Part shown: positions 6,084 through 32,245 of the stretch, one piece after another
Layout of the letters: every line of letters begins with the position of its first letter
How positions within the stretch are numbered: the stretch's first letter is position 1
NCBI GenBank assembly: GCA_977020255.1
Contig: CDROCS010000666.1
Location: forward strand, 248,001 to 312,000
From: Obrimoposthia wandeli
Lineage: Eukaryota
Direction: 5' to 3'
Length of the DNA stretch: 64,000 nt
Translations under genes and position numbers: made by a program
Notes under the pieces: generated by a model
What the model was told of the DNA's origin: nothing
Database searches by the model: none
The model's input: only the letters and a program-made list of their open reading frames with translations

Positions 6084-6659
6084 TCAGAGTGGCCAGTGAT
6101 CAAAATAGATATGGTTTGCTTGCCAATCGACTTTTTCTTGGTTATCAACAAGTAGATATTTTGCAACTGTAAAGGCAAATTCAAAACTGACACCTAACCC
6201 TTTACCGCTAATAAACTGACCATCGACCACCACTTTTTGATCGAGAAACTGACCGTCATCGAATTTCTTATCTAAACCTGCCCCTGTTGTATAATAGTGC
6301 CGCCCCAACAGTTGATGAGCGGCTAATACCTTGGCTCCGGATGAACACAAGGCACAGATATATTTATCTTCATTAATATGACGTTTGAGGAAATCAATCA
6401 CCACAGGATTGGCTGACAGATTATCAGTACCTTTCGGTCCCCCTGGCATCATGACAGCGTCATACATCGTGTCGTGACAGTTTTTAAGAATATCATCAGC
6501 TGTAATACGTGTTTCAAAATAGGTATTCAACGCTGTCGTTTCCATACATGACAACACCGTTACTTTAATATCTAATCGACGCATAATATCGATAAATACG
6601 ACAGCTTCACCTTCTTCGAATCCATCAGCTAACAAAACAGCAACATGCTTCTCTGTCAT
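6084..6659 (-). CDS. DJ-1/PfpI (ThiJ/YajL-like) family protein
   Basis: VAVLLADGFEEGE, YDAVMMPGG and ICALCSSG (nucleophile Cys) motifs; last gene of the kdgK-eda transcript. Confidence 0.9.
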   Translation of the reverse strand: MTEKHVAVLLADGFEEGEAVVFIDIMRRLDIKVTVLSCMETTALNTYFETRITADDILKNCHDTMYDAVMMPGGPKGTDNLSANPVVIDFLKRHINEDKYICALCSSGAKVLAAHQLLGRHYYTTGAGLDKKFDDGQFLDQKVVVDGQFISGKGLGVSFEFAFTVAKYLLVDNQEKVDWQANHIYFDHWPL

Positions 6660-6668
6660 ATTTAACTC

Positions 6669-7304
6669 CTATAAATTCAATAATTTACACGTTTCACGAA
6701 CATTATTCGCAATGGTTTCCCAATCGTTGTCACGAATAGCTGCCGTTGGTGCAATCCAAGTACCACCGCAGGCAATAACCTGAGGAATCGCAAGGTACTC
6801 CATCAAGTTTGCTGGCTTCACACCACCTGTAGGCATCAACTGAATATTGCCGTATGGACCTGTTAGTGACTTCAGCATATTGATCCCACCTGACGCTTCT
6901 GCAGGGAAAAACTTTAGTGCAGTAACTCCTAATTCCAACGCCTGCTCAACTTGGCTTGGGCTATTAACACCAGGAATAATTTTCACCCCCTGTTCAAGGC
7001 AATATTTAACTGTCGTTGGGTTAAACCCTGGGCTAACAATAAAATCCGCTCCAGCTTTAACCGCTAAATCGACCTGCGCAGGAGTCAGCACTGTACCTGC
7101 ACACAGGATAATATCAGGGAGTGCCGCGCGGATCAGGCAAATAGATTCGGCGGCCGCTGCACTGCGAAAGGTAATTTCTGCAGCTGGTAAGCCATTGTCA
7201 CTGAGTACCTGCGCCAGCTTTACTGCATCTTTGGCATCTTCAATCTGGATAACTGGCATCACTCGTAATGCTCTTAATGTTTCAATCCACTTCTCATTCA
7301 TCAT
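6669..7304 (-). CDS. eda: KDPG/KHG aldolase
   Basis: EITFR, GAGTV-like CAGTVL, KFFPA and MPTGGV motifs. Confidence 0.95.
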   Translation of the reverse strand: MMNEKWIETLRALRVMPVIQIEDAKDAVKLAQVLSDNGLPAAEITFRSAAAAESICLIRAALPDIILCAGTVLTPAQVDLAVKAGADFIVSPGFNPTTVKYCLEQGVKIIPGVNSPSQVEQALELGVTALKFFPAEASGGINMLKSLTGPYGNIQLMPTGGVKPANLMEYLAIPQVIACGGTWIAPTAAIRDNDWETIANNVRETCKLLNL

Positions 7305-7305
7305 C

Positions 7306-8422: not shown

Positions 8423-9376
<954 letters not shown>

Positions 9377-9385
9377 ATTTTGAAA

Positions 9386-10894
9386 TCAAAAGAAATGAAA
9401 CATTTTCGATGTGTAACACGTAACACCCTTGCGAAGAAGGTTGTTTTTAGGTCTTTCCGCCCGCCCAACTAGCCTTTCTAATACCCGATCTAGCCATGAT
9501 TGCGGTTCTAATCGACGGGTTAGCGGTGTTTGCTGCAAGATATAGTCACTATGAAAGATCACAACGACCTCTTTCGTTTTGAAAGTCCCGAGCACACTGG
9601 CTTCAATTGCAGGGATCTCAAAGGAAAAATCGCCTTTTTCAACTTCAAGTCGCGATTCTTCGGCCTGCCATAGCCCTGAGCGGTGCCCACTAAATAACGC
9701 TATATTCAGAGCCCGCAGTGACCAGAAACTGCTAGCTGGCCCACTGTAATTATCAACCAATCGGGCATCATCAGAAAAAACACCTTGCGTCGGTGCCCCA
9801 TGCTCTAAAGCGCCCTGACTAATGAAATATTCAAGGCTGGTGCGAAAAGCACGCTTCGCTTCTCCTACCGAAAGGTTTGAAGCCTTTACATCAATAGCAG
9901 CAAGTAATGGCGCGGAAGCCGCCAATCGGTAACACACACTACGACCAAAAAATGGTAGCCCTTCAGGGGTAAAGAAATAACGAAATTTATCAACAAAGGT
10001 GGTTAAACTATGATGAATAAACTCAGGATCAAAATCTGGATTGATCTGATCTAACCAATATAAAGAATAGAAAAAGCCCCAAGCATTATAGTAATCATAG
10101 TTACCACGGGCTCCATCACGGAACCAACCGTCGCCAACATAAAATTCTTTTACTCGAGCATATTTATCATGAGCAATGGTATCTTCCCCAGTTAGATCTT
10201 TGATCACCAACTGGACGGTAAGCGGGAAAAGGTGCCAGTTATTATCAACGGTCTGGCAAGTATTCACTTGCTTAAACCATGTTGCCACCTGCTTTCGTTC
10301 AGCTAAGCTGAAGTGCTCCCAAACCCATTCTTTGCTCAGCCATAACGCAAGCGCCAGATCAGCACTTTCACAAATCCGCTGATCATAATCATGCAACTGG
10401 CCCCAATAACCTTTGTGCTCAGGGTCGGTACCAGCAAGAAATGCGGTTCGCAGTAACCCTGCAACATCAATCGCTTTATTATTCAGCCCGTTGATCACAG
10501 TCGTTGCCTGGCCATTGGCATGTAACCATGCAGCCAACGTTGGTATCACTCGACTAACCCCTTCCATAGCATCCGTTCTAGCGGTTTGCTGACTTGGCCG
10601 ACCAGGGTAATAGGCATGGGTATAATCCCATACTGCATAGTGTTCAAAAGCTTCGGCAATGTAGCGCACCAGCTGATCACATTGCTCTTGTAAGCTATAA
10701 GACAACCGTCCCGTATCAGAGTCGAACACCTGGCGAATAGCTTCATCATGCATACTATAGGCTGGCTTCTTATTACGTAGCCTAATCAAGTTCTCTTTGA
10801 ATAACTTGAGGTACATTGCAGCATCAGGATGTTCATAAGGGATAGTCGGACGCAGTTTGGCACTTATTTCTTTTTGCATGATTATTTCACTCAT
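9386..10894 (-). CDS. DUF2264-domain protein (candidate GH154-like glucuronidase), cytoplasmic
   Basis: EGVSR..P.LA, DQRICESA, NNWHLFP, FYVGDGWFRDG, DYYNAWGF and FGRSVCYR motifs fit DUF2264; no signal peptide. Confidence 0.75.
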   Translation of the reverse strand: MSEIIMQKEISAKLRPTIPYEHPDAAMYLKLFKENLIRLRNKKPAYSMHDEAIRQVFDSDTGRLSYSLQEQCDQLVRYIAEAFEHYAVWDYTHAYYPGRPSQQTARTDAMEGVSRVIPTLAAWLHANGQATTVINGLNNKAIDVAGLLRTAFLAGTDPEHKGYWGQLHDYDQRICESADLALALWLSKEWVWEHFSLAERKQVATWFKQVNTCQTVDNNWHLFPLTVQLVIKDLTGEDTIAHDKYARVKEFYVGDGWFRDGARGNYDYYNAWGFFYSLYWLDQINPDFDPEFIHHSLTTFVDKFRYFFTPEGLPFFGRSVCYRLAASAPLLAAIDVKASNLSVGEAKRAFRTSLEYFISQGALEHGAPTQGVFSDDARLVDNYSGPASSFWSLRALNIALFSGHRSGLWQAEESRLEVEKGDFSFEIPAIEASVLGTFKTKEVVVIFHSDYILQQTPLTRRLEPQSWLDRVLERLVGRAERPKNNLLRKGVTCYTSKMFHFF

Positions 10895-10939: not shown

Positions 10940-12547
10940 TTATTTAGCTGACTCTGTTAGAATCTCATATCGATCCTGTCCCCAAGCAATAGGGGCTGGC
11001 TTGTTCTTTATCCAATCATAAAAAGCAGCTTTCAGCTCTTTCAGTTTCTCTGGATGTTTTTTAGCAAGGTTAATCGACTCAGCAGGATCTTGTGTATAGT
11101 TATATAGCTCATACTCACCTTTTCCATCATCGTAATAGTGCAATGACCAGTTTTGATCCTTGATTGCCCACTCCCCTTTCGAGCGTTTTTCAGTGTACTT
11201 ACTCGGGATAAACTCATTGGTTTCGAAAGTGATCCACTTCCAGTAGTTACTCCAGAAATCGGCATTACTTGAGTCATAATGAAGCGCACGTGGACCAGCC
11301 CAATATAGATACGGGTGTGGTTTTTGCTTTTCACCACTCAAAAGTGGCATGATATTTTTACCGTCAACTTTCATTTCAGATGGAATATCAATACCTGCGG
11401 CTGCCAAGGCTGTTGGAAGAATGTCCATTGCTGAAATCATAGTGTTATCAACATTGCCTTCTGGAAGTACGCCTTTCCAGTGCGCTACAAATGGAACATG
11501 GACACCACCACGATAACGCTGACCTTTGAATGCACGGTTCATACCGTTCATCGGCATCGGTGATTCATGCACGGCACCATTGTCTGAAAGGAAGAAAATC
11601 AGGGTATTTTCGTACTCTCCCATGGCTTTCAGCTTATCGATAATCTTGCCAATCCCTTCATCCGATGCATTGACGTGGGCGTAATATTTATCAACTTCTA
11701 CATTACCGGTGTTGAAGCGTTCCATGAATTTAGCCGGTGCTGGCTGTTCAAGCGGAATGTGAGGCACGCTATAGGCTAAGTTGATAAAAAATGGCTGATC
11801 TTCATCCTTAGCTTCTTCGATAAAATTAATGGTTTCGTTAGTCAGGTTATAAGTTAAATAACCTGGTGCCGGAGTATTCTCACCATTCTTAAAAACAGTC
11901 GGAGAGTTATACAATGCTGCCCCAGAAACATAATAACTATAGGAGTAATCAAAACCGCGCTCTTCCGGCCCGTATCCAGGCTCTGCAATCGATATTTGGT
12001 TATCGTGATAATCTCGGCTTTGCTCATCTAATGGCTTAAATTCCTTACGTACTTTGGCATTATGATATTTACCAATGTTCGCCGTGGCATAGCCATTTTC
12101 ATTCAGCAGTGCAGGGAGCAGTTTAATATCCAGCGGAATACCTAACTTGGCATCATCGTTACTATAAGTACCAAAGCTATGCGGAAAACGTCCAGTCATC
12201 ATGCCTGCACGCGATGGTCCGCACACTGGCGTCGCCACATACGCATTGGTCATGCGTACACCTTCATTCGCCAATGCTGTAATATTAGGCATTGAACGTT
12301 TAGCCGCATCGTATAACTTATCGAAGTCACCATCATAGCGAACTGGCACCGGACGTTCAGACAACCTTGCCTTATCAATTTGGTCCATTGCAAAATCTAG
12401 CTGTGCGGAACCCAAATCATCCATCACAATCAATAAAACATTTGGTTGTTCAACTTTTTCTGTTGCCATAGAGGTAATAGGTGTCACCGCACACGCAGCA
12501 GCGACAAAACCAGCCAGTACCGTCTTCTTTGACGAGGACAGTTTCAT
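10940..12547 (-). CDS. Exported S1 sulfatase, YdeN-like
   Basis: Sec signal, PNVLLIVMDDLG, CGPSRAGMMTG (C-x-P-x-R), GKYH, and SRDYHDN / SDNGAV segments I recall from E. coli YdeN. Confidence 0.9.
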   Translation of the reverse strand: MKLSSSKKTVLAGFVAAACAVTPITSMATEKVEQPNVLLIVMDDLGSAQLDFAMDQIDKARLSERPVPVRYDGDFDKLYDAAKRSMPNITALANEGVRMTNAYVATPVCGPSRAGMMTGRFPHSFGTYSNDDAKLGIPLDIKLLPALLNENGYATANIGKYHNAKVRKEFKPLDEQSRDYHDNQISIAEPGYGPEERGFDYSYSYYVSGAALYNSPTVFKNGENTPAPGYLTYNLTNETINFIEEAKDEDQPFFINLAYSVPHIPLEQPAPAKFMERFNTGNVEVDKYYAHVNASDEGIGKIIDKLKAMGEYENTLIFFLSDNGAVHESPMPMNGMNRAFKGQRYRGGVHVPFVAHWKGVLPEGNVDNTMISAMDILPTALAAAGIDIPSEMKVDGKNIMPLLSGEKQKPHPYLYWAGPRALHYDSSNADFWSNYWKWITFETNEFIPSKYTEKRSKGEWAIKDQNWSLHYYDDGKGEYELYNYTQDPAESINLAKKHPEKLKELKAAFYDWIKNKPAPIAWGQDRYEILTESAK

Positions 12548-12572: not shown

Positions 12573-13850
12573 TTATTTATTAGCCTGTAAGTTAGCTAAA
12601 ATAGGCATGACGTTGGCGGCAAGCCCGCCTCGTTGGATTTCTTGCGCCATTAAGTGCATCGCAGGTGCACTGTGGCTAAAAATTTGTTGATAGGATTGGC
12701 ATAAATAATTATGTTTATGCTTTTCACCTTCAATGGTGGTGATGCGGTGCTTAGGACAACCGCCATAACAGAGCGCTTGAAAATCACACTGCTGGCATCG
12801 CTGAGTTAACTTAGAGGATTTGGCGCTACCAAAACGCTGCTGTTGCTTGCTCGTTGCCAGCTTCGCAATATTGGTTTGAGTGATATTGCCAAGCCGATTG
12901 GCAGGATAAACATAGTGATCACACGAATAAAGGTCACCATTTGCTTCAATCACCATGGCTTGACCACACTCTTTAGCCTGCACACATACCGAGGCAGGGT
13001 AACCCATCCATGTCGCTAGCATGCTATCGAACATACGAACGAAAATGTGCCCAACATCCTGCTTAACCCACTCGTTAAAAACCTCAGTCATGAACTGACC
13101 ATAGCCATGAGCAGGAACAGAAAAGTGGGTCAGGGTTGCATCGGCGGTTGGTGAGTAATGACCACGATTACTTTGCTGGCAATGCTGCTCAACTTCGACA
13201 ATCGGAATAAACTGAAAGTGCTTAGAGCCCAGCGCTTTTAATACCTGATAAGTCTCTTTGCCTTTATCCCAATTCTGATCATTGATGACGGTTAGAGTAT
13301 TGAACTGAACATTAAATTCTTTCAACAATGATATGGCATGCTTTACACGCTCAAATGTCGGCTTGCCATTAACTGAAATACGGTACTTATCATGGACTTC
13401 AGGCGCCCCGTCGACAGACACTCCAATAAGAAAGTTATTATCTGCAAAAAACTTTGCCCACTGCCGATTAATCGCGACAGCATTGGTCTGAAAACTGTTG
13501 GTAATCACTTTCCCATCTGCGTACTGCTGCTGGTATTTGACTGCATTTTTATAAAAATCAAGGCCTGCGAGGGTTGGTTCACCGCCTTGCCAAGCAAAAT
13601 CAATCTCATCTGCATCTTGCGAGCGAATATAGTCACGTACATAACGTTTGAGCATTGCATCAGACATGTTTTCTGACGCTTTCGAAGCTATTGCACTTGC
13701 ATCGCCAGCAACACGACAATTATCTTTCTGTTCTGAATTTTTCATCATTTCTTCTTTTTCAAGATAGAAACAATAATCACATTTCAAATTACAGCGATAA
13801 CTCGCTGGTTTCGCCATCATGTGAAAGCGTGCACGTTGTGACTGTCTCAT
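12573..13850 (-). CDS. Anaerobic sulfatase maturase (radical SAM/SPASM; YdeM/AslB-like)
   Basis: CNLKCDYC, WQGGEPTL and the SPASM Cys cluster (C...YSCDH...CQQC...CYGGCPKHR...NYLC). Confidence 0.93.
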   Translation of the reverse strand: MRQSQRARFHMMAKPASYRCNLKCDYCFYLEKEEMMKNSEQKDNCRVAGDASAIASKASENMSDAMLKRYVRDYIRSQDADEIDFAWQGGEPTLAGLDFYKNAVKYQQQYADGKVITNSFQTNAVAINRQWAKFFADNNFLIGVSVDGAPEVHDKYRISVNGKPTFERVKHAISLLKEFNVQFNTLTVINDQNWDKGKETYQVLKALGSKHFQFIPIVEVEQHCQQSNRGHYSPTADATLTHFSVPAHGYGQFMTEVFNEWVKQDVGHIFVRMFDSMLATWMGYPASVCVQAKECGQAMVIEANGDLYSCDHYVYPANRLGNITQTNIAKLATSKQQQRFGSAKSSKLTQRCQQCDFQALCYGGCPKHRITTIEGEKHKHNYLCQSYQQIFSHSAPAMHLMAQEIQRGGLAANVMPILANLQANK

Positions 13851-13892
13851 CGCAATACCTACCGTTTACATAGAAGAACTCCAAAGATAATA

Positions 13893-14147
13893 CGAAAGAA
13901 AACGAAAAACTAAAGCGACAAAAGTCACACTAACAGATAATTCAAAAGGCAATGAAAGGCACCAATCCACTTTTATGTTGTAAACATCAACAACGAAAGT
14001 AAAAAACCAACAAAACGAAAGCTAGGGCAATTTATTTGTTGTGATTTACATTCAACAAACCAAAAACAAAAGCATTCGTAAGCTACCATGTATTTACACT
14101 TGTGATTCAGATCAAAAAATAACCACTTAACTTTCGATAGCCTTTCG
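13893..14147. promoter_or_regulatory. Probable AgaR operator cluster in the divergent anSME / lyase promoter region
   Basis: CGAAAG at 13893, 13994 and 14016 (last two 22 bp apart); CTTTCG at 14131 and 14142 (11 bp apart). CRP-like TGTGA-TTCAGA-TCAAA near 14101. Confidence 0.65.
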
Positions 14148-14178
14148 ATAAAAGAATGCAACATAAAAGGATAGACAA

Positions 14179-17100
14179 ATGAAAACATGGAATAAACCAA
14201 GATATCTTGCTCTGAGTATTATTATTGCCCTTACTGGCTGTGGAAGTGAAAGTATTCACTCCCCCACAGAAAGTGAAAACATTGATGGAAAGGGCGCACA
14301 AATTGAACCTGGTGGTTATATGTACTTCTTCGAAGAGGGATTGCCACAAGCGATTACATCTTCGTCAACCAAACCTCTTTCAATCAGTAATGAGCACTAC
14401 AAAGATGGCTCACATGCTTTGAAATGGGCATATAGCCCAAACAGCCAACTCACTTTTCACCAGCGTATTGATTTCACCAATAACGACAGTGACACCACCC
14501 CCTACACCTTCATGGCATGGGTCTATAATGAGCAAGCTTCCGATAAAAAGCTTACTTTTCAATCTGGCACAAAAGAAAATTATCAAGCTCAGTTTAGTTA
14601 TTCTCTTAACTTCAAAGGCTGGCGTGGGATTTCAGTTCCTTATAGGGATATGGAAGGTACACCAAGTGAAGGCATGAACCGCTTAACGATCTCTGCCCCT
14701 GACTCTTCTGGAACGCTGCTTTTTGACCAAGTCATGCTGGCCGTCCCTGTTGATAACCGCTGGCCAACACCGGATTACCACCAGCCTTTTGTCAACCCAA
14801 CCGTCATCGACATGGCAAGCAAGAATTGGACTGCATTGCTGATGTACGATCAAATGCTTAAAGCTGAAAATCCCCGCTTTAACTTCAGTGCAGAGTTTAG
14901 TGATACTCAGGGAGACGCCGCACCTCTTTACCGTCAATTTGATCAACACCTTGCTGTTAATGAACAGCAAACCATCAGCCAAGAAAAAATCGATGCCAAC
15001 CTGGCAAAATACACCCAATTCAACATTCGGTATAACGCTGATGAATCAGTAACAGGGGAACCCCTTGATCATCCCAAACGCCATAACTTTTTAAAAGCTG
15101 GCATTGTCGGAGATGCAACCCTCGCCATGTTGACAGATACCATGGAAGTCCGGACGCTAGGCAAGACAATGCTGGAAACAGCCAAGTTTCTTCGTACTCG
15201 TTCTCTTTCAGCAGCAAACCGTGATTCGCTAGAAAAGGTATTCGTTGATGCAACTCGATACGCCCTCAATCAAGGTTGGGAAGGCGGCTCAGGTTTTCAA
15301 ATCATCACACACGTTGGTTACCAAACCCGTGAGTACTTCGATGCGATGTTCGTTGCACGCCAGCTACTAGCAGACAACCAACTACTCGAGCCTGTTCAAC
15401 AATCTATGATGTGGTTCAATGCTACAGGTCGAGTTTATGAAACCGACGATCGGATTAATTCATCCAACGTCGACATCCTTAACACTCAACTACAATGGAT
15501 GGTCAAAAGCTTCCTGCTATTACCGGATCAATCAGAACGTGACATGATGCTTAAGCAACTGCAATCTTGGCTCAGCAAAACTTTACTCGCTTCCGATGGA
15601 TTAAGTGGTGGATTCAAGCCAGATGGCAGCGTCTTCCACCATTCACAGCACTACCCAGCCTACGGAAAAGATGCTTTTAATGGATTATCTGGGGCCGTCT
15701 TCGGCCTAAGCGGCAGCACATACCAACTATCACAGGCTGCTCATGAACGGATAAAAGATGTTTTGCTTAAAATGAGGGTATACACAAAAGAAACCCATAC
15801 CCCCATCGTATTAAGTGGCCGTCATCCTGATGGCAAACAAAAAATCTCTGTAACACCATTCAAGTGGTTAGCACTTTCTGGATCGCCTGATAGTACGCAA
15901 TCTACAGATCCCGACTTGGCTGCTGCTTATGCAAATTTAGTTAAAAATCCCACCTTTGAAGGGATTGCAGCGGAAGCTGAACCAACTGGTGTATGGGCAA
16001 TGAACTATGCATCAATGGCAATAGCAAGAGGGCAAAGTCCAACAAAACCAACCCAATCTTGGTTAGCCACAGCCCGAGGATTCAGCCGCTACTTAGTCGG
16101 CAATGAGACCTACCAAGCTAATAATCTGTATGGCCGCTATCTTCAATATGGTCAACTTGAAATAACACCCTCAGACTTCTCGAAACAAGCCTTTAGCCAC
16201 GATGGCTGGGACTGGAACCGCTATCCGGGAACAACGACCATACACTTGCCAAATAACGAATTGAAAACAGTACTTAACCAGCTACCCGGAGCTGGTATAG
16301 AAGAAATGTTGCTGTCCACTGAAATTTATTCGGGTGCGAATACCCTAAATAACGACAGCGCGATGTTTGCGATGAAATTACACGGCCACAAAAAATATGG
16401 TCAGCAAAGCCTGCACGCCAGAAAATCGTATTTCATATTTGATAACACCGTTGTAGCCCTTGGCTCTGGAATCGAAAATGATGATAGCCAGCATGAAACG
16501 GAAACCACCCTGTTCCAATACAGTATCCCCAACCTTGAGCCGGTAGAAGTTAACGGTAATCCGATTAACACCCTCGGCACCGATATGACCCTCACAACAG
16601 ATTCAACATTCCTCGACCCAGCGGGTAACCGTTACTTTGTCAAAAATATTGCCGACGAACAGGTACGTTTTAGCTATCAGGCACAAAATTCCAATGACGA
16701 GGATGACGGCCAATCAACAACCGGTCAATTTGCCTCGGCTGTTATTGAGCATGGTAAAGCCCCTGTCGATGGTCGCTATGAATATGCTATCAATATCGAA
16801 GCGCAAAATACGATCAAGCCGAGTTACACCGTTCTTCAGCAAGACAACAAAGTGCACGCTGTTCGTAGCGAAAAGGGGGTAGAGGCCTACGCCTTCTTTG
16901 AACCAGCAACGCTATCGAATACAAACTGGGTCATTGCATCGGATACCCCGTCGCAAATCATGCTAAAGATCAATCAAAGCGCGGATCAACTATCGCTCAG
17001 TGTTGTTAACCCCGATCTGGCTCTCTATGAAGGCCAAGATCCAGAACAGATCGACGCCAATGGTGAACAAGTGGAAGTCAGTATCTACAGCCGACCATGG

Positions 17101-17280: not shown

Positions 17281-17300
17281 CTAAACATATAGAAATGATC

Positions 17301-20568: not shown

Positions 20569-20578
20569 TGTGTTCTCC

Positions 20579-21334: not shown

Positions 21335-21433
21335 TTGGAATTCCTGATAACTTTTTAATGCGGCACGGCACGTTCAGTAATGCAAGGTGAATAGGCAACG
21401 TAGCCATACCGCTAGTAATAAATAAGGTGGGGA

Positions 21434-23469: not shown

Positions 23470-23913
23470 TTATAGTCCGTCTTCACATTCAGCAACTGGC
23501 TCTAATTCCATCACCGCTTCTAATTCTTTACGCATGTCTTGCATACAAGAAGCACCAATTTCCAACAGTGTCTCAACTAACTCTTGTAAACTAACGTCTT
23601 CACGTTCGAATGCTGCATTGGCAATCATTGGCAAATTTGCCCCTGCAATCAGTTCGATATTTTGCATATCCATCATGATCGCCAATGCACGATTACACGG
23701 TGATCCCCCTGGAATATCAGTCAAAAACAACACACCTTCACCAGAATCTGCTAACAGTGCAGCCTGACGAAGTTTGGCTTCCAATTCATCCGTCGACATA
23801 GATTCCACAAAATCAATGAATTCCATTTGCTTTTGTTCGCCCGCAATCGCTTTAACGGCTGATTGCATACCAGATGCGAAATGAATATGACCTGAAACAA
23901 CAATACCAATCAT
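23470..23913 (-). CDS. agaF: Mannose-family PTS EIIA
   Basis: SGHIHFASGM (phospho-His), LTDIPGGSPCN and GANLPM. Confidence 0.9.
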   Translation of the reverse strand: MIGIVVSGHIHFASGMQSAVKAIAGEQKQMEFIDFVESMSTDELEAKLRQAALLADSGEGVLFLTDIPGGSPCNRALAIMMDMQNIELIAGANLPMIANAAFEREDVSLQELVETLLEIGASCMQDMRKELEAVMELEPVAECEDGL

Positions 23914-23971
23914 CTAAAAATCCTTGATATGGGGGGAATAACTCCCCCCTGATATATCGAAATGTGATTAC

Positions 23972-24865
23972 TTAAAGAATACCCAAGAAATGGCCCACAA
24001 CACCTGCAGCCAAGGTTGCGAAGATTAGAACCGGAGGCTTAGCCCAGAACCCTGTACCTTTAACCATTTTGAGCATAAAGAACACTAAGGCTAAAGGCAG
24101 TAGGTTAGGCATGATCTTATCGAATAAGGCGGTTTGTAATTCAACCGTCGCCCCTCCCATCTCTAACGATGCGGTCGTCTGAACCCGTATAAAGGTGGCG
24201 GACAAAGCTCCGATAACAAAAATACCCATGATATTGGCGGCTTTCGCCAGCTTCTCGGTAGTATCACTCATGCTCACCATGGCAGCGGTACCCGCTTTAT
24301 ATCCCATGAACATCAAGCCAAAATAGGCTAAGAAGTGAGCTATTTGATACAAAAAGAAGAAAACAAACGGACCCGCAATAGACCCTTCAAGTGCAATTGA
24401 TGCACCCAGCGCTAAGGTCAATGGCATTAACGTCATGTGATCAAGAGCATCACCAATCCCGCCTGTTGGTCCCATACCTGCAACCTTCATAACATTCACT
24501 GTTGAAGGTTTTTCTTTGTTCTCTTCCATTGCTACTGCTGTACCCAGTAAGAAAGTGAACAATTTAGGGCTAGCATTAAAGAACTGCAGATGGTTTTTTA
24601 ATGATTTTGCAAAATCATGTTTATTATCACCGTGAATTTTCTTCAGTGCTGGAATAATGGAATAAGCAAAACCACCAGCCTGCATACGTTCAAAGTTAAA
24701 GTTACCTTCCATAAACAGACCGCGTAGTGCACACATCCACAGGTCTTTCTTCGTGATTACTTTTCGCTTTGTTTTATCTTCATATGCATCAACATCATCA
24801 ATTAAATTTTCATAAGTTTTGGTGTTTTTATCGGCTAGCGTGCCAACTGTAATATCAGATGCCAT
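23972..24865 (-). CDS. agaE: Mannose-family PTS EIID
   Basis: NFNFERMQAGGF, HLQFFN and GPTGGIGD; start moved to ATG 24865, overlapping the EIIC stop. Confidence 0.9.
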   Translation of the reverse strand: MASDITVGTLADKNTKTYENLIDDVDAYEDKTKRKVITKKDLWMCALRGLFMEGNFNFERMQAGGFAYSIIPALKKIHGDNKHDFAKSLKNHLQFFNASPKLFTFLLGTAVAMEENKEKPSTVNVMKVAGMGPTGGIGDALDHMTLMPLTLALGASIALEGSIAGPFVFFFLYQIAHFLAYFGLMFMGYKAGTAAMVSMSDTTEKLAKAANIMGIFVIGALSATFIRVQTTASLEMGGATVELQTALFDKIMPNLLPLALVFFMLKMVKGTGFWAKPPVLIFATLAAGVVGHFLGIL

Positions 24866-25619
24866 CTTCGAATTCCTTATCTTGATTATTTGAATTACCG
24901 TTACCACTGAAGAAGAAGAACAATGCAGCAGCTGATGCACCTAAAATTGCAACCGCCATAATTGGCAACTGTAGATATGTTGTCATGACGAAACCAATGA
25001 AGAACACACCCGCCACTTCTTTCGACCACATAATTTTAAGTAGCATTGCAAAACCAATCGCAGGTACCATCTTCGCGCCAATGCCTAGCCCCTCAAGTAA
25101 TACTTTCGGCGCATTTTCATCAATCCACGTTGCCGCATGTTCGCCAAAGTACACCGTGATAAATGCTACAACAGAATAGAGAAGCGCTCGTAAACCAAGG
25201 GTTGTTATTAAGAGGCGGTCAATACCATCAGAATCACCTTGCTCAGCATATTTATCTGCCTTACCCATAGTGAATGACGTAACAGCAAAGAAGCCAATCA
25301 CAAGCATTTGCATAAGTACAGCGATAGGCATACCAACACCCATTGCAACTTCAGCTGTTTGCCCTGTCATCACTGCAAAAGCAACCGCAGCAATCGTACC
25401 CAACGTTACATCTGGTGGCTGAGCACCGGCGTTAGGCACTAAGCCCAACCAAGCAAGTTCAAGTGTTGCACCGGCAATCAAACCAATTTGCATATCACCC
25501 ATGATCAGACCAACAACTGGTCCAGTAATTAACGGACGGTGGATATTCAATGCGACATCGTATTTATCGATACCACAGAAGAACGCCCATACCGCGACAA
25601 GCATCGCTTCAAAAAACAT
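24855..25619 (-). CDS. agaW: Mannose-family PTS EIIC
   Basis: HRPLITGPVVGLIMGD, GATLEL, GAQPPD and PAIGFAMLL. Confidence 0.9.
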   Translation of the reverse strand: MFFEAMLVAVWAFFCGIDKYDVALNIHRPLITGPVVGLIMGDMQIGLIAGATLELAWLGLVPNAGAQPPDVTLGTIAAVAFAVMTGQTAEVAMGVGMPIAVLMQMLVIGFFAVTSFTMGKADKYAEQGDSDGIDRLLITTLGLRALLYSVVAFITVYFGEHAATWIDENAPKVLLEGLGIGAKMVPAIGFAMLLKIMWSKEVAGVFFIGFVMTTYLQLPIMAVAILGASAAALFFFFSGNGNSNNQDKEFEDGI

Positions 25620-25654
25620 AACTTATTCCTTTATCTATGATTTATTGATTGGCT

Positions 25655-26155
25655 TTATGCATTTTTAATTGCAAGTTCAAGCACATTGATAGGCTTCTGA
25701 TCCGGTGTGTTTTGTACCGTACACGTCACGCCTCGCTCAACCATACGTTCAAATGCATTCAAATCGTTATCATCAACAGATACCGTTTTCGCTATCTGCC
25801 GTTTACCTTCGTGAAAGTGCATATTGCCAACATTACAGTGAGTAATTGACACACCACCTTCAACAAGGCGCGCAACATCTGTTGGGTTGTTACACAGAAT
25901 AAAAATATTCTGTTTTGGCGATGCTTTATGGATCACATCAATTGTTTTCTGAATAGAAAAAAAGCGTACAGCATATTCGCCACCGGCTGATGCTTTCATT
26001 CCTGCCTGCATAAAGGCGGCATTTGGTCCTTCTGCGGCATCATCATTAGCCACTAAAATAAGGTTTGCTTCGGTGTGTTTACCCCAAGTAATACGAATTT
26101 GACCATGTAAAAGACGCTCATCAATACGTGTCCAAACAATATTAGGTGCAGTCAT
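25655..26155 (-). CDS. agaV: Mannose-family PTS EIIB
   Basis: RIDERLLHGQ (phospho-His) and NVGNMHF. Confidence 0.92.
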   Translation of the reverse strand: MTAPNIVWTRIDERLLHGQIRITWGKHTEANLILVANDDAAEGPNAAFMQAGMKASAGGEYAVRFFSIQKTIDVIHKASPKQNIFILCNNPTDVARLVEGGVSITHCNVGNMHFHEGKRQIAKTVSVDDNDLNAFERMVERGVTCTVQNTPDQKPINVLELAIKNA

Positions 26156-26180: not shown

Positions 26181-27344
26181 CTAATTATTTAAGTTATGAA
26201 TAGTGACACCTTGAACCACACGGTTTACTTCACCAGTTGGGCAAGGGTTATCAGGTGTATTGCCTAACGTAATGGCGCGATGAAACGCATACGTTTGAGC
26301 GAAAATCATATAGGGAAATAACAGTTCAACATCAGTTGCTGAATCCATATCAGGTACCAGATAGTAATCACCATTGGCCACTAACTCATCTTTCTGAGCC
26401 GTAATAGCAATCACTTTTTTAGCTGTATTATCACGTCGAAGTTCACTAAGAAGATCGAGGTCATATTGGCGGGTATAAGGGTCATTAGAAATGAAAACGA
26501 CAATCATCGTTTCACTATCAACAATAGATTTTGGTCCGTGACGAAAGCCTAGTGGGGAATCAAAACATGCCACAACTTTACCAGCAGTTAACTCTAGTAA
26601 TTTTAATGCTGATTCCTGAGCCAAGCCCTGCAGACCTCCGCTTCCTAAGTAAATAACACGCTGAATAGTATCCTTTGCAATACTACTGATATTTCTATTA
26701 ATTTCTTGGACTAGCGCCTCAGAACACTTACAAAATCTTTCGATTTCTTTCGTGTAATCGTTACCAGAGGTAATAACTGAAAAAGCGGCTAACATCATTG
26801 ATGAGAAACTTGACGTCATCGCAAAGGATTTGTCATTTGTTTCTTCTGGCATTAACAATGCGAATGATTTGTTATCATTCACAGCGTTTTTATATAATTG
26901 CCCTTCCCCATTACACGTCAGCATAAGGTGAAAACAATTTGTAAGGCACTGATTAGCGAGCTCTACTGCTGCTACACTTTCAGGGCTATTACCAGAGCGA
27001 GCAAAAGACACTAATAGCGTTGGCAGATCTTCCGCAAAAAATTGAGAAGGATTTGAGACTAAATCAGTAGAAGCAATGGCTTCAACTCGTAAACCCGTTT
27101 TCTTTGATAACGCTGGTGCTAATGCACTACCCGCAAAAGCCGATGTTCCCGCGCCAGTCAGCACAATCCGTAAATTAGGCAGTGCTAGTACATTGCTCAT
27201 GAATGCATTAATTGCAGGTTGACACTCTTGTATAATGGCGTGAGTTTTACGCCAGCAAGATGGTTGCTGCTCAATCTCTTTTGCCGTCCAGAATGCATTA
27301 AGCCGTTTAAGTTCAGGCTCGGAATAGCCAAGATATTGGTTCAT
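26181..27344 (-). CDS. agaS: Galactosamine-6-phosphate deaminase/isomerase AgaS (SIS domains)
   Basis: EIEQQP, GAGTSAF, FARSGNSPES, FAMTSSFS, LGFRHGPKS and VNRVVQGV. Confidence 0.94.
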   Translation of the reverse strand: MNQYLGYSEPELKRLNAFWTAKEIEQQPSCWRKTHAIIQECQPAINAFMSNVLALPNLRIVLTGAGTSAFAGSALAPALSKKTGLRVEAIASTDLVSNPSQFFAEDLPTLLVSFARSGNSPESVAAVELANQCLTNCFHLMLTCNGEGQLYKNAVNDNKSFALLMPEETNDKSFAMTSSFSSMMLAAFSVITSGNDYTKEIERFCKCSEALVQEINRNISSIAKDTIQRVIYLGSGGLQGLAQESALKLLELTAGKVVACFDSPLGFRHGPKSIVDSETMIVVFISNDPYTRQYDLDLLSELRRDNTAKKVIAITAQKDELVANGDYYLVPDMDSATDVELLFPYMIFAQTYAFHRAITLGNTPDNPCPTGEVNRVVQGVTIHNLNN

Positions 27345-27354: not shown

Positions 27355-28641
27355 TTAATCTTTATTTAGTTTGCATGCCTTCGCGTAGCTGCGAAGTACC
27401 TGACGAATCTTTTCAAGAACCAATGTTTTTGGATCTGCGCTTATTTGTCCTTCACGCACTGCATGAAATTGCTCGGGAAGATATTGGCTCAATAATGGAA
27501 GTGGTATACCGGCACGCGTTAGGTTGTCGAACAACTTACTTTGTGCTGCATGGATATTTTGATCAGGCCAGTAGTAACGAATGCGGTCACTAAAGCTATA
27601 ACAGCGAGCAAAACGCTGCTGTGACTCATTACCCTGATAATATTTATTCCAATATTCAGGAGCATCACACATTTGTTTTTCTATATGTTCTTTCAAGTTT
27701 GAACAGTATGCTTTAGGCACTATTTCAGCTTCGATATCACATAGATTAAAGAGCGCTTCGCGCATAGCAAAGGTAAGTGCGGGACCGACTTTCAAAATAG
27801 CAAAATGATCATCAACCAGCGCTTTATACGCTTTGTCGGTTTGATAGTCGGTTGAGTGCGCTTCAAAAATAAGGTGATCGTGGTGATTAATCACGTTACT
27901 TAATGCTTGGGCTTTTTCTGAGCAGTAGTCGATAACACCTGTGTGATCAAATTCAACACCAGGTTGTACAACAAGACCTATAACCCGAGACCAGCAACTT
28001 GAAACACCGACTTTTTCAAATGCTTCTTTGTGGCTACGAATTGTTTCGTTTGCAGCCTCGGCTGACGTTACTTCAAGTTCAGCCAATTCTTCAGCGGCAC
28101 CACCAGGTACTGGAACTTCAGTACCGATGACATAGACCAGATCGCTGGCACCAAAGACATTAATCGCAGTATTTTCAGCAATCTTAGCTAAACGGGCAGC
28201 ACGCTCTGCGACAATCGCATCAGATAATGGGATTGGATCCCCTAAACAAGACATACTGCAATCGAGGTGAATTTTCTTAAAACCTGCCGCAACATATGCA
28301 TTAATCAAGACATCTGCATTATTCATCGCTTCTTCAGCAGCAAGATGCTGCCAACGATTAGGACCAAGGTGATCGCCACCAAGAATGAGGTTTTCAGTTG
28401 GAAAGTGAAGCGCTTCCGCTTGTTCTAAAACAAAATTACGAAAATCAACAGGTGTCATACCTGTATAACCACCAAATTGATCCACTTGGTTGGAGGTAGC
28501 TTCAATTAATAATAAAGAATCATCGCTTAGCGCCTGAGTAAGCGCCGCCTCAATAACTAACGGATGAGCAGAGCAGGCAGAATAAATGCCATTTTTATCG
28601 CCTGCTTTATGGCGCTGAACGAGATTTAGAAGGGTGTTCAT
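27355..28641 (-). CDS. kbaZ: KbaZ/GatZ-family protein
   Basis: [49 protein letters not shown] and [11 protein letters not shown]. Confidence 0.94.
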
Positions 28642-28689
28642 TTACTAACTCCATAGTCAACATCTAAGATGCGGCGATGGAGTTAGCGA

Positions 28690-29466
28690 TTAATTTCCTT
28701 TTTCGACAATAATAACGTCAACTTTCATTTCACGAAGACCCTGTAAATAGTCTTCAGGAATATCAGAATCTGTTACCAAGATATCAATATTTCCAAACTC
28801 TCGAATCATGTGACAGCTACGTTTACCAAATTTGGTAGAATCGACAACTGCAATAACCTGTTCAGAAATTTCACACATCAAGCGATTGAGGCTTGCCTCT
28901 TGTTCACTGTGTGTGGTGATACCTGCTCGCAAATCAAAACCGTCTACACCTAAAAATACCTTATCAAATCGGTAATTTTTTAAGCTGCTTTCAGCTTGCG
29001 AGCCTGAAAAAGAAAGTGCACCTTTACGAAGTACACCGCCAGACATCAAAACCTCAATTCCAGGTGCTGATGCCAACTCCATTGCTACATCTAGACCGTT
29101 GGTCATTACCACTACATCATCTAGTGCTTTCAAACTAGACGCGATTTCTCGCGTTGTAGTACCCGAATCCAGAATAACCGTGTCACCACTTTCAATCAGT
29201 TTCGCTGCCGCCTGACCAATAAGAGATTTAATGCCGGCATTTTGACGGCGTTTCTCATGAACAGTCAGCTCTGCTATTACCCCAGAATTCGGAATTGCCG
29301 CACCGTGTGAACGAACCACATAGCCATTTTTTTCCAGAAAACTAAGGTCACTGCGAATAGTGACACTAGAGACATTAAATTGTGCAGCAAGATCCTCAAC
29401 ACGAGCTTTACCATCACGGTTAACTAGGTTAACGATTTCCATACGTCTTTCGACAGCACTTTTCAC
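28690..29466 (-). CDS. agaR: DeoR-family repressor AgaR
   Basis: ERR..I...V, VS.VTIRSDL..LE, ILDSGTTT and FLGVDGFDL..GITTH; heads the aga operon. Confidence 0.93.
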   Translation of the reverse strand: MKSAVERRMEIVNLVNRDGKARVEDLAAQFNVSSVTIRSDLSFLEKNGYVVRSHGAAIPNSGVIAELTVHEKRRQNAGIKSLIGQAAAKLIESGDTVILDSGTTTREIASSLKALDDVVVMTNGLDVAMELASAPGIEVLMSGGVLRKGALSFSGSQAESSLKNYRFDKVFLGVDGFDLRAGITTHSEQEASLNRLMCEISEQVIAVVDSTKFGKRSCHMIREFGNIDILVTDSDIPEDYLQGLREMKVDVIIVEKGN

Positions 29467-29500
29467 TTTACTTTGTCTCCTTACGAAACCAGCAAAATCT

Positions 29501-29792
29501 CTTTCGCTTGATTTCGAATACAGCTTACACCTAAAAACGAAAGCAACAATGCGTAAAATGAAAACTTTTGATCTCTTTCACATTCTTTCGCATTCTTGCA
29601 CTTACACTTGCGTACATTTACGCATTTGATGACATCATAACCTTCGAAAGACCCATTGCCAAACGTAAACACCGTTAATGCGGCATACCTTTCACTTTTC
29701 AATCGTACAACCTTTCATCTACCTTTCGTAAAAAGCACTATTTCACTTTCGATTTCTTTTCTGTGATCAAATACACAGTCAATACTCTTTCG
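29501..29792. promoter_or_regulatory. Probable AgaR operator cluster between agaR and the Tat sulfatase
   Basis: CTTTCG at 29501, 29585, 29723, 29746 and 29787; CGAAAG at 29538 and 29645. CRP-like TGTGA-TCAAAT-ACACA at 29763. Confidence 0.7.
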
Positions 29793-29914
29793 ATAACTTA
29801 CGATTCGCAATAAATCGTAAGCACAAGAGCAGAAATTAATAACTAAAACAATAAGTGAAAGTTTTTTGCTTTCACTTGTTTTTATCCAATACATTTCACG
29901 TTCAGGAGTTGAAC

Positions 29915-31477
29915 ATGTCTATCACCCGCCGAAGTTTGCTAAAAGGGATGGCTGCAACCAGTGCCGTTGCCGCTACAACGATGAGCTCTGGTTGTACTAC
30001 AGCCCAGCAAAACCCTACGGACTCCTCTTTATCAAATACTAAGGTAAAGAAGCCTAACTTACTTATTGTTTTCCCAGACGAAATGCGTGCCCAGTCTTTG
30101 GGCTTTATGAATCAAGATCCTTCAGATACACCGCATATCAACCGTTTTGCAAACCAGAGTGCCGTTCTACGCCAAGCCGTCTCCAACTTTCCACTGTGTA
30201 CTCCATTTAGAGGCATGCTGATGACTGGTCAATATCCATACCGTAATGGTATTCAGGGTAATAGCCACACAGCAATGCCCGGTAAGTTTGGCGGCAAAGA
30301 CTTTGGTATTGAACTAAAGAAAAGCACTCGAACTTGGTCTGATGTGCTTAAAGACCAAGGCTACAGCATGGGGTATATAGGGAAATGGCACCTTGATACG
30401 CCAGAGGCACCTTTCATTCCGAGTTATAACAACCCGATGGAAGGCCGTTACTGGAATGATTGGACAGCTCCGGATCGTCGTCATGGCTTTGATTTTTGGT
30501 ATGCCTATGGTACTTACGATAAACATTTAACACCCATGTATTGGACCAATGAGACACCACGTGATCAACCAATCAAAGTGAATCAGTGGAGCCCTGAGCA
30601 TGAAGCCGATATCGCCATAAAATACCTGCGTAATGAAGACGGTAAATACCGTGATAGTGACAAACCGTTTACGCTGGTTGTCTCTATGAATCCCCCCCAC
30701 TCTCCCTATGATCAAGTGCCGAAAAAATACCTCGACCGTTATCAGAATGATACTTCTGAAAGCCTTAATACCCGACCAAATGTTCAATGGGATAAAGATT
30801 ATCAAGAAGGTTATGGACCAGCGTACTTCAAAGAGTACATGGCAATGGTACATGGTGTAGATGAGCAATTTGGCAGGATTATTGATGAACTTGACCGCCT
30901 TGGTCTGGAAGAAGACACCTTGGTGGTATTTTTCTCCGATCATGGCTGCTGTATGGGATCTAACGGTAAGCCCACCAAAAATGTCCATTATGAAGAATCA
31001 ATGCGCATTCCCATGATGTTCCGCTGGCCTGGTAAAATTTCACCACGCCAAGATGATCTACTCTTCTCTGCTCCTGATATCTACCCAACCATTTTCGGTT
31101 TAATGGGAATGCCAGAACTGATCCCAGACACAGTGGAAGGCTTTAACTATTCCAACAGTGTTCATGGGCTTGAAGGCGACAACAGACCGACATCTCAAAT
31201 GTATACGTTTATGCCTTACGGCGGTCAATCCTACGGTCGTCGTGGCGTACGAACCGATCGTTACACCTTAATGGTCGACCGCAAAATAGGTAAGCCGCTT
31301 ACTTTCGTTTTGCACGACAACCAGAACGACCCATACCAGATGCAAAACATCGCAAAACAGAATGAAAGCATCGTTGCTTCTTTGATTGAAGAAGAACTAC
31401 TCCCTTGGTTAGAGCATTCCGGTGATCCTTGGCGCCCAACAGAAGTGCCAGCATCAGCAGCAAATGCATACACCTAA
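29915..31477 (+). CDS. Tat-exported lipoprotein sulfatase, BT3349/S1_27-like chondroitin GalNAc 4-O-sulfatase
   Basis: AGGAG RBS and ATG 29915; S.TRRSLLK Tat motif and SSG-C lipobox; CTPFR active site; GKWHLD, RRHGFD.W.AYGTYD.HL.PMYW and VVSMNPPH blocks I recall from BT3349. Confidence 0.85.
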   Translation: MSITRRSLLKGMAATSAVAATTMSSGCTTAQQNPTDSSLSNTKVKKPNLLIVFPDEMRAQSLGFMNQDPSDTPHINRFANQSAVLRQAVSNFPLCTPFRGMLMTGQYPYRNGIQGNSHTAMPGKFGGKDFGIELKKSTRTWSDVLKDQGYSMGYIGKWHLDTPEAPFIPSYNNPMEGRYWNDWTAPDRRHGFDFWYAYGTYDKHLTPMYWTNETPRDQPIKVNQWSPEHEADIAIKYLRNEDGKYRDSDKPFTLVVSMNPPHSPYDQVPKKYLDRYQNDTSESLNTRPNVQWDKDYQEGYGPAYFKEYMAMVHGVDEQFGRIIDELDRLGLEEDTLVVFFSDHGCCMGSNGKPTKNVHYEESMRIPMMFRWPGKISPRQDDLLFSAPDIYPTIFGLMGMPELIPDTVEGFNYSNSVHGLEGDNRPTSQMYTFMPYGGQSYGRRGVRTDRYTLMVDRKIGKPLTFVLHDNQNDPYQMQNIAKQNESIVASLIEEELLPWLEHSGDPWRPTEVPASAANAYT

Positions 31478-31516
31478 TTTATTTACACAATCCTAAACAC
31501 AATTAGAAAGGTTATT

Positions 31517-32245
31517 ATGAAAACGACACTTAAATTTGTTGCCGCTTCTATGTTATTGGCAACAACCTCACATGCAGTCGCAAATGACTATAAAACGACC
31601 GTAGAGTACCGACACGAATATAAAGATGGAAATAACAAACATTCTGATCGCGTAAAAGCCTTCATCGATACAGGAAAAAATATCGGCTTCGAATTAGATG
31701 CTCGTTATAACAACGATGAAGAAGACAAAATGTATGATTCTATGTCGATGAATGGCTCTGAATTATCAATCTTCTATTACACAAAGCTTAAGCCTAACTT
31801 AACAGGTGTGTTTGGCTCTTCATTAGATTTTAACCCTGATGGCTTGGTCTATGTACCTTACGCACGTTTAAATTATTCTTTTGATAATGGCTTCCGCATC
31901 CAAGGTCGATATAAGTGGAAACTATGGGATTACAGTCAAGAAGGCACTGATGGCAATAGCTATCACTCTAAGATTCAGCAGTTTGATACTTGGCTAGGTT
32001 ACAAAACAGGAGATTGGGATTTCCAATATGAATTCAACATTTGGAAAGAGATGGAAGGCAACGGAAAAGCTTTATTTGATAACGGCTCAACCGATTATTT
32101 GCATAACATTCGCTTAATGTATGCCTTTAATATGACTGATGGTGCAAAGTGGCGCCCATTTTTTGAACTAGGGCAAGTAAAATTAAACCGCACAACAGAT
32201 GAGCGTCAGCTTCGTTATCGCGTTGGTATTAAATACACTTGGTAA
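31517..32245 (+). CDS. KdgM/NanC-family acidic-oligosaccharide porin
   Basis: Signal peptide, EYRHEY N-terminal motif, alternating beta-strand pattern and C-terminal RYRVGIKYTW; 242 aa. Confidence 0.82.
   Translation: MKTTLKFVAASMLLATTSHAVANDYKTTVEYRHEYKDGNNKHSDRVKAFIDTGKNIGFELDARYNNDEEDKMYDSMSMNGSELSIFYYTKLKPNLTGVFGSSLDFNPDGLVYVPYARLNYSFDNGFRIQGRYKWKLWDYSQEGTDGNSYHSKIQQFDTWLGYKTGDWDFQYEFNIWKEMEGNGKALFDNGSTDYLHNIRLMYAFNMTDGAKWRPFFELGQVKLNRTTDERQLRYRVGIKYTW

Follow-up and report, generated by a model that had tools for sequence, protein, structure and literature searches.

A putative AgaR-controlled regulon for chondroitin/dermatan sulfate utilization on a Photobacterium contig

Proteus mirabilis grows on chondroitin sulfate (CS) supplied as the only carbon source, and PMI2124, PMI2127, and PMI2128 are required for this growth (PMC12991141). 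Recent work has shown that CS breakdown helps this uropathogen colonize the catheterized bladder. According to the 2026 papers on Proteus, it is not known which signals control the lyases, and no regulator is named there. In Escherichia coli, AgaR represses agaZ and agaS via direct binding, and its physiological ligand is undetermined even in this organism (PMC4694137). Here, we analyzed a stretch of 64,000 nucleotides (the window) from contig CDROCS010000666.1 of an assembly deposited as Obrimoposthia wandeli. Listing of open reading frames (ORFs) together with family scans revealed a CS utilization locus of 23 genes in four strand blocks, ∼26 kb long, at positions 6084 to 32245 (Table 1). 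From its sequence, we read this locus as the chondroitin/dermatan sulfate utilization regulon of Photobacterium, in which AgaR would repress both the N-acetylgalactosamine (GalNAc) branch and the uronate branch, and we give this reading a probability of about 0.65. AgaR control of both branches had already been proposed in an initial annotation made from the DNA alone; box enrichment, box conservation, operon placement, and a search for KdgR now support the proposal in silico.

Within the window, CTTTC and its complement were concentrated in four intergenic regions (9290 to 9385, 13851 to 14178, 17281 to 17550, and 29467 to 29914). Over the 1142 bp that these regions comprise, CTTTCG was the top enriched hexamer, with 19 copies seen versus 0.72 expected (p = 8e-21) from the remaining 10.4 kb of the window's intergenic DNA, which held only 6 copies. 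Tandem pairs of the form CTTTC-N5-6-CTTTCG occurred four times in the window versus 0.04 expected, and all four lay inside the locus. Genome-wide counts gave a similar picture: the CS locus accounted for 3 of the 4 tandems of P. mirabilis and for 4 of the 11 of Photobacterium indicum; by our own Poisson estimate, the chance probability of this clustering is <1e-5 in each genome. A promoter-like site for agaR at 29662..29634 is overlapped by a box.

The boxes are conserved well beyond the window. Upstream of kbaY, the flanking CTTTCG words and a central TGTGATCTnGATC element are retained across nine additional genomes ranging from Photobacterium to Budvicia and Proteus, and corresponding boxes were present upstream of agaR, anSME, and sulfatase-2 in Photobacterium jeanii, Photobacterium damselae, Budvicia, and P. 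mirabilis. In E. coli K-12, the agaR-kbaZ and agaS upstream regions, both of them controlled by AgaR, hold 13 CTTTC and 7 CTTTCG in 598 bp, often 10 to 11 bp apart, and the AgaR of the window is 48% identical to that of E. coli, with a near-identical helix-turn-helix and recognition helix. A CTTTC consensus for proteobacterial AgaR was reportedly described by Leyn et al. in 2012. Taken together, these data support the CTTTCG boxes as candidate AgaR operators for both the GalNAc and the uronate branches. CRP-like elements accompany the boxes: one-mismatch sites were found at 14101, 29567, and 29762, and the TGTGATCTnGATC element, at 9330 to 9350 on the minus strand between the boxes upstream of kbaY, fits the CRP consensus in its left half and poorly in its right half. 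Over the whole window, the CRP consensus was not enriched (29 matches versus 34 expected).

Two further occurrences of the motif lie outside the promoter regions. A tandem, CTTTCGATTTCTTTCG, is located at 26737 to 26752 (plus strand) within the agaS coding sequence, ∼580 bp upstream of the PTS IIB gene, and is also found in P. indicum, P. damselae, and a Vibrionaceae metagenome-assembled genome; it could be an intragenic operator, an internal promoter, or a mere coding constraint. Two lone CTTTCG words at 5599 and 5631 lie in the gap between the convergent recX and DJ-1 genes, beside a bidirectional terminator-like hairpin at 5914 to 5936. They are upstream of no gene and are probably due to chance.

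We then considered how the uronate genes might be controlled. AgaR had been described as the only regulator of the system, and indeed the 6- to 32-kb part of the window encodes no second regulator, nor was one found inside the locus in any genome examined; a TrmB-like regulator at 34354 to 35172 belongs to the adjoining maltodextrin genes. The genes kduID and kdgK-eda lack both boxes and KdgR-like palindromes of their own, and no KdgR-like palindrome was found anywhere in 5400 to 32600. Only 51 bp separate agaA from the start of kduI, and kbaY is followed by kdgK-eda, which complete the uronate branch. The host assembly contains 28 IclR-family matches spread over many unrelated contigs, which indicates that its contents mix several organisms, and gene-absence searches were made in the near-identical P. 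indicum genome in its place. No KdgR ortholog was found in P. indicum or P. mirabilis, where the only IclR-family genes scored 48 and 118 bits against a cutoff of 275; the sole P. mirabilis member is IclR itself. The earlier statement that no KdgR is present holds for the locus and extends to the two related genomes searched. In both of these genomes, kduI is a single-copy gene located within this locus.

RNA contigs from four marine-sediment libraries mapped to the operon at 90 to 99% identity. They span agaA-kduI in three runs, kduI-kduD in one, and IID-IIA-agaA in one, and two further contigs span the IIA-agaA junction. These bridging contigs fit cotranscription of agaA, kduI, and kduD. The gene order in which ygjV follows GH105 on the same strand, noted in the initial annotation, was found as described, but a terminator-like hairpin (-18.9 kcal/mol, z = -3.2) lies before ygjV. 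Because this hairpin after GH105 is followed by a U-run, ygjV is perhaps a separate unit.

Several observations weigh against our reading, some of them on regulation and others, taken up below, on uptake. The four regions were chosen after the boxes had been seen, although they are the sole sizeable regions that head transcription units. The 99-bp kduI-kduD gap and the ∼170-bp kbaY-kdgK gap could hold independent promoters. A contig from an RNA library need not represent one transcript, and DNA can be present in libraries of this kind. Quantitative PCR in P. mirabilis showed no induction of the sulfatase gene PMI2124 by CS and induction of the lyases in some experiments only; PMI2124 has CTTTC-type boxes upstream despite this lack of induction. 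One potential explanation is that AgaR controls only the amino sugar genes, and their neighbors by read-through, with the lyase, the sulfatases, and the uronate genes mainly under CRP, an unlinked regulator, or constitutive internal promoters and with the nearby boxes weak or nonfunctional. The Proteus expression data fit this explanation, as do the absence of boxes from the gaps before kduD and kdgK and the conservation of CRP-like elements beside the boxes. We nevertheless consider it unlikely. The box density at the lyase and sulfatase promoters equals that at agaR and is conserved across orders, the tandem boxes are almost confined to the locus genome-wide, and the genomes searched yielded neither another regulator gene in the locus nor, in P. 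indicum or P. mirabilis, a KdgR.

The lyase has the four-domain architecture of chondroitinase ABC (Lyase_N, Lyase_catalyt, Lyase_8, and Lyase_8_C) and an N-terminal lipoprotein signal ending in LTGC. It scored 508 bits against the Bacteroides structure 2Q1F and just 236 bits against Proteus vulgaris ABC I (1HN0). In P. mirabilis, two lyase genes lie in tandem: the first is ABC I (2128 bits to 7EIP/1HN0), and the second is PMI2128, a predicted exolyase (PMC12991141), to which the lyase of the window is 56% identical over 970 amino acids. This identity, set against the low score to 1HN0, rules out an assignment as ABC I. The lyase is the ortholog of Proteus chondroitinase ABC II and is predicted to be an exolyase; since it is closer to PMI2128 than to ABC I, the locus would have an ABC II-type enzyme only and no endolyase.

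Both sulfatases appear to be exported enzymes of the S1 formylglycine type, as evidenced by their CGPSR and CTPFR motifs, their Sec and twin-arginine translocation (TAT) signals, and the anSME maturase encoded beside them. Sulfatase-2 aligned end to end with 6J66, the chondroitin/dermatan sulfate 4-O-endosulfatase of Vibrio sp. FC509 (1076 bits). This alignment begins at residue 21 of the ORF, where the TAT-type signal (RRSLLK) also begins, and 29915 is therefore the most likely start of the gene. With its Cys-type motif C-T-P-F-R, sulfatase-2 is predicted to be an exported GalNAc-4-O-sulfatase acting on chondroitin and dermatan sulfate. Sulfatase-1 has a 28-residue Sec signal and the Cys-type motif C109-G-P111-S-R113. 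The exo-GalNAc-6-O-sulfatase PB_3285 of Photobacterium sp. QA16 is encoded by a 1,608-bp gene and has a 28-amino-acid signal and catalytic C109, P111, and R113 (PMC8819143). Sulfatase-1 matches this enzyme, compared by its description only, in gene length, in signal length, and in all three residues, and the published mutagenesis primers for PB_3285 (PMC8819143) encode the same peptide around the cysteine. Among the solved relatives of sulfatase-1, S1_19 carrageenan sulfatases ranked best, and human GalNAc-6-sulfatase (4FDI) was also present (6.5e-38). The case for sulfatase-1 as an exo-GalNAc-6-O-sulfatase and the counterpart of PB_3285 is strong but circumstantial, because the match is to the published description of PB_3285.

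The Pfam label of the hydrolase reads GH88. However, its best match in the PDB was the GH105 unsaturated glucuronyl hydrolase 4CE7 (1.4e-65), YteR (1e-14) and several other GH105 entries were also matched, and no canonical GH88 unsaturated glucuronyl hydrolase was among the matches at E <= 1e-5. This comparison rules out GH88, and the GH105 call of the initial annotation stands. The DUF2264 protein is a distant member of the "GH154" family, with PDB matches to 8OI4 (6e-14) and to 9O4U, or BcGDH (7e-10). The Bacteroides caccae member of this family, once called GH154, is a beta-D-glucuronate dehydratase that converts a saturated glucuronate (GlcA) at the nonreducing end into an unsaturated uronate for the uronyl hydrolase (PMC12269599). 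On the basis of the residue list in that study, the DUF2264 protein conserves the positions aligned to BcGDH N176, N177, W178, F181, Y229, R285, and Y289; the aligned motifs are N-N-W..F, the DYYN tyrosine, and the arginine and tyrosine of FGRSxxYR. Neither GH105 nor DUF2264 carries a signal peptide, and we predict that the latter is a cytoplasmic beta-D-glucuronate dehydratase.

How might the lyase products enter the cell? None of the 23 proteins matched a TonB-dependent receptor or SusD model, and the outer membrane component of the locus is instead a KdgM porin, on which a signal peptide was found; its gene starts 39 bp past sulfatase-2 in the same orientation. The TonB-independent route through a porin and a phosphotransferase system (PTS) that had been suggested for this DNA is supported by the absence of a TonB-dependent receptor gene from the locus and of signal peptides from GH105 and DUF2264. 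With no GalNAc kinase and no exported hydrolase, the locus argues for import of the disaccharide by the PTS. Published results for the Proteus counterpart, namely growth on CS that requires PMI2124, PMI2127, and PMI2128 and the impairment of a ptsH mutant on CS-C, are in line with this. The points on the other side are that a TonB-dependent receptor may be encoded elsewhere in the genome; that IID, which bears on the PTS substrate, reached just 249 bits against the AgaE cutoff of 500; and that, while a ptsH mutant of P. mirabilis grows poorly on CS-C (PMC13289894), ptsH defects are pleiotropic.

If the PTS imported free GalNAc only, the disaccharide would have to be carried in by SDF, by YgjV, or by some unlinked system, unless it were cleaved outside the cytoplasm. 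That IIA, IIB, and IIC pass the GalNAc-specific AgaF/V/W cutoffs is in keeping with such a route, and so is the presence of YgjV and of an SDF transporter with upstream boxes. We regard this as improbable, to about the same degree as the narrower role for AgaR, given that GH105 and DUF2264 lack signal peptides and that a GalNAc kinase, required if unphosphorylated GalNAc were freed inside the cell, is not encoded in the locus. Moreover, neither SDF nor YgjV occurs in the P. jeanii, Budvicia, and Proteus loci, where everything else is retained, IID diverges from AgaE, and there is precedent for a streptococcal mannose-family PTS that imports an unsaturated glycosaminoglycan (GAG) disaccharide (PMC12838403).

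From the gene identities, signal peptides, box enrichment and conservation, and synteny observed here, we infer the cell locations, the PTS substrate, the inducer, the repression itself, and the metabolic flow as follows. A surface or secreted lipoprotein exolyase of the ABC II type would free unsaturated disaccharides, which would pass the outer membrane through the KdgM porin. In the periplasm, the two exported sulfatases, matured by anSME, would strip the 4-O and 6-O sulfates and expose the C6 hydroxyl of GalNAc; periplasmic desulfation would come first because the PTS needs this hydroxyl to be free. The Aga-type PTS would then import and phosphorylate the disaccharide, and the cytoplasmic GH105 would cleave it into 4-deoxy-hexosulose-uronate and GalNAc-6-phosphate, with the DUF2264 dehydratase readying saturated GlcA ends for GH105. 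AgaA, AgaS, and KbaYZ would take GalNAc-6-phosphate to triose phosphates, and KduI, KduD, KdgK, and Eda would convert the uronate into pyruvate plus glyceraldehyde-3-phosphate.

AgaR would repress all of the units of this regulon through the repeated CTTTCG boxes and would probably be relieved by a GalNAc-derived phosphate. The units in question would be agaR through GH105, sulfatase-2-kdgM, the lyase, SDF, anSME through DUF2264, and an internal kbaY-kdgK-eda-DJ-1 promoter, and CRP probably activates them. Least probable of the alternatives is that the natural substrate is, instead of vertebrate-type CS, some other polymer akin to it (dermatan sulfate, hyaluronan, unsulfated bacterial chondroitin, or the fucosylated CS of marine invertebrates): ABC-type lyases are broad, the organism is marine with related transcripts from marine sediments, and a lone exolyase may be poor on long chains, but both sulfatases have counterparts characterized on CS disaccharides, and the Proteus orthologs degrade CS-A, CS-B, and CS-C and not hyaluronan or heparan sulfate (PMC12991141).

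The genes of the locus were called with NCBIfam models at their own cutoffs and with Pfam domains, and solved relatives were found by sequence comparison with the PDB (Table 1). Each gene named in the initial annotation was recovered in its place by these searches. To call the system complete was slightly generous, since the locus lacks a tagatose-6-phosphate kinase, an endolyase, and a hexuronate-2-O-sulfatase; the kinase would have to come from outside the locus, as in E. coli. Most of the genes once listed as being of unassigned function can now be assigned. The DJ-1 gene is the final gene of the anSME-to-eda operon and is kept at this place in Photobacterium, Budvicia, and Proteus; its product might detoxify reactive dicarbonyl intermediates.

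Table 1. Features of the CS utilization locus (coordinates of the window; scores in bits, with model cutoffs where available)
Feature	Position	Strand	Block	Evidence or content
DJ-1/PfpI family gene	6084-6659	-	1	TIGR01383 123, under cutoff 131; PF01965
eda, 2-keto-3-deoxy-6-phosphogluconate aldolase	6669-7304	-	1	NF004325 284 (cutoff 241)
kdgK, 2-keto-3-deoxygluconate kinase	7306-∼8250	-	1	KdgK model 353, under cutoff 400
kbaY, tagatose-1,6-bisphosphate aldolase	8423-9289	-	1	TIGR01858 521 (cutoff 444)
Internal promoter region upstream of kbaY	9290-9385			Four CTTTCG, including palindrome CTTTCGATTCGAAAG; conserved CRP-like TGTGATCTnGATC
DUF2264/"GH154" family gene	9386-10894	-	1	PF10022 285
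Sulfatase-1	10940-12547	-	1	PF00884
anSME (radical SAM/SPASM)	12573-13850	-	1	TIGR03942 509 (cutoff 349)
Divergent promoter region anSME/lyase	13851-14178			Six CTTTC (five CTTTCG); tandem 14131-14147 just past promoter-like site; CRP-like 14101-14116
PL8 lyase	14179-17280	+	2	PF09092, PF09093, PF02278, PF02884
Region upstream of SDF	17281-17619			Five CTTTC (three CTTTCG)
SDF (sodium:dicarboxylate symporter family) transporter	∼17620-18798	+	2	PF00375 285
ygjV, YgjV-family inner membrane protein	18904-19434	-	3	PF10688 163
Terminator-like hairpin	19458-19491	-		15-bp stem and U-run, between GH105 and ygjV
GH105-type hydrolase	19519-20568	-	3	PF07470 253
kduD	20579-21334	-	3	NF006528 434 (cutoff 430)
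kduI	21434-22264	-	3	NF002091 459 (cutoff 250)
agaA	22316-23467	-	3	
PTS IIA/IID/IIC/IIB	23470-26155	-	3	AgaF 165 (cutoff 130), AgaW 330 (300), IIB 180.3 (180)
agaS	26181-27344	-	3	AgaS model 642 (cutoff 529)
kbaZ	27355-28641	-	3	KbaZ model 792 (cutoff 707)
agaR, DeoR-family repressor, leads long operon	28690-29466	-	3	NF040755 423 (cutoff 260)
Divergent promoter region agaR/sulfatase-2	29467-29914			Ten CTTTC (seven CTTTCG), two tandem pairs
Sulfatase-2	29915-31477	+	4	C-T-P-F-R motif; 6J66 match
kdgM, KdgM-family outer membrane porin	31517-32245	+	4	PF06178 128

The host assembly (1.35 Gb in 6912 contigs) carries this bacterial contig inside the assembly of another organism. The lyase is 95% identical to the lyases of P. 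indicum and Photobacterium frigidiphilum, and AgaR shares 99% identity with its P. indicum counterpart; the owner of the locus is a Photobacterium of the indicum/profundum group. None of eight locus proteins sought by exact match was present in the protein collection. Past kdgM, ∼2.1 kb without any ORF of at least 90 amino acids (32246 to 34353) divides the CS locus from maltodextrin/cyclodextrin genes. Inside the locus, the SDF gene and ygjV are arranged tail to tail at 17620 to 19434. In E. coli, sstT, of the same transporter family as SDF, and ygjV are convergent neighbors beside uxaCA; the SDF protein matched SstT weakly (53 bits).

A synteny search across relatives, which had been suggested as a check, recovered a 21-gene core in several Photobacterium species, Psychromonas, Budvicia, and Proteus, and a related lyase was present in 24 of 301 sampled Vibrionaceae species. 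Two genes are accessory: the P. frigidiphilum, P. jeanii, Budvicia, and Proteus loci lack SDF, and ygjV is present only in the closest Photobacterium loci. In P. damselae, ∼9 kb of unrelated DNA lies between the lyase and GH105 (positions 13051 to 22215 of our locus L018), and the locus is split by this insertion.

The lyase, both sulfatases, the dehydratase family, the PTS-based GAG loci of streptococci and Vibrio, and the AgaR box and regulon are already known. The assembled picture, with one repressor over both branches together with lyase, sulfatases, and porin, was not found in the literature searched, a search whose scope left Leyn et al. 2012 and RegPrecise outside; nor did the same literature contain GH105 with a GH154-type dehydratase in a CS pathway or a small porin replacing a TonB-dependent receptor. 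A broader proposal, which we offer as tentative and hold with clearly less confidence than the regulon itself, is that AgaR and CRP form the master switch of a polysaccharide regulon common to Photobacterium/Psychromonas, Budvicia, and Proteus and that three of its steps are without biochemical precedent: a mannose-family PTS phosphorylating the unsaturated chondroitin disaccharide, GH105 rather than GH88 cleaving the phosphorylated product, and a cytoplasmic GH154-type dehydratase rescuing saturated GlcA-GalNAc ends.

What the locus would provide is a coherent outline of how proteobacteria use a sulfated animal glycan, with desulfation first, in the periplasm, and a small porin in place of a TonB-dependent receptor. 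GH105 and a glucuronate dehydratase would replace GH88 and a glucuronidase. The locus would also mark a minority of Vibrionaceae as consumers of animal-derived GAGs. With a candidate regulator, candidate operators at defined positions, and a likely CRP input, the question of how CS genes are regulated in Proteus becomes directly testable.

The closest described system is the locus of P. mirabilis and P. vulgaris. It shares with the Photobacterium locus sulfatase-2, the ABC II lyase, GH105, kduD, kduI, agaA, the four PTS genes, agaS, kbaZ, and agaR, as well as anSME, sulfatase-1, DUF2264, kbaY, kdgK, eda, and DJ-1, at protein identities of 54 to 88%; the operon structure is the same, and CTTTCG boxes occur at the corresponding promoters. 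The P. mirabilis order is sulfatase-2, OmpG-like porin, autotransporter, ABC I, and ABC II, with agaR through GH105 on the opposite strand, then anSME through DJ-1. Proteus adds the ABC I endolyase, an autotransporter, and an OmpG-like porin that replaces KdgM, whereas Photobacterium adds the SDF transporter and YgjV. In P. mirabilis, the OmpG-like porin (294 amino acids) and the autotransporter (721 amino acids) are encoded between the sulfatase and the two lyases (positions 3691 to 6778 of our locus L028), and the OmpG-like porin of Proteus and the KdgM porin of Photobacterium are nonhomologous proteins in the same functional position. The aga/gam regulon of E. coli resembles the locus in its AgaR ortholog, kbaZ, agaS, kbaY, agaA, mannose-family PTS, and clustered CTTTCG boxes. 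It differs in that the E. coli regulon includes neither a lyase nor sulfatases, a porin, GH105, or kdu/kdg genes and that its substrate is the free amino sugar.

In the hyaluronan loci of streptococci and Vibrio alginolyticus, a PL8 lyase that is extracellular or at the surface works ahead of a mannose-family PTS for the unsaturated disaccharide (PMC12838403, PMC8222515). These loci have no SusC/D pair, and their unsaturated uronyl hydrolase, which is cytoplasmic, acts before an isomerase, a reductase, KdgK, and Eda. In contrast to the Photobacterium locus, they use GH88, target hyaluronan, and have no periplasmic sulfatases, anSME, dedicated porin, GH154-type dehydratase, or AgaR; for the Vibrio locus, the authors proposed a TonB-dependent receptor for passage of the outer membrane. 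The CS polysaccharide utilization loci of Bacteroides (Bacteroides thetaiotaomicron and B. caccae PUL25) likewise combine a lyase, 4-O and 6-O sulfatases, and an unsaturated uronyl hydrolase, and in B. caccae PUL25 a GH154-family glucuronate dehydratase primes saturated ends (PMC12269599). The Bacteroides loci rely on SusC/D, GH88, hybrid two-component or other sensors, and periplasmic breakdown to monosaccharides, whereas the Photobacterium locus would rely on porin and PTS uptake, GH105, late steps in the cytoplasm, and a DeoR-family repressor.

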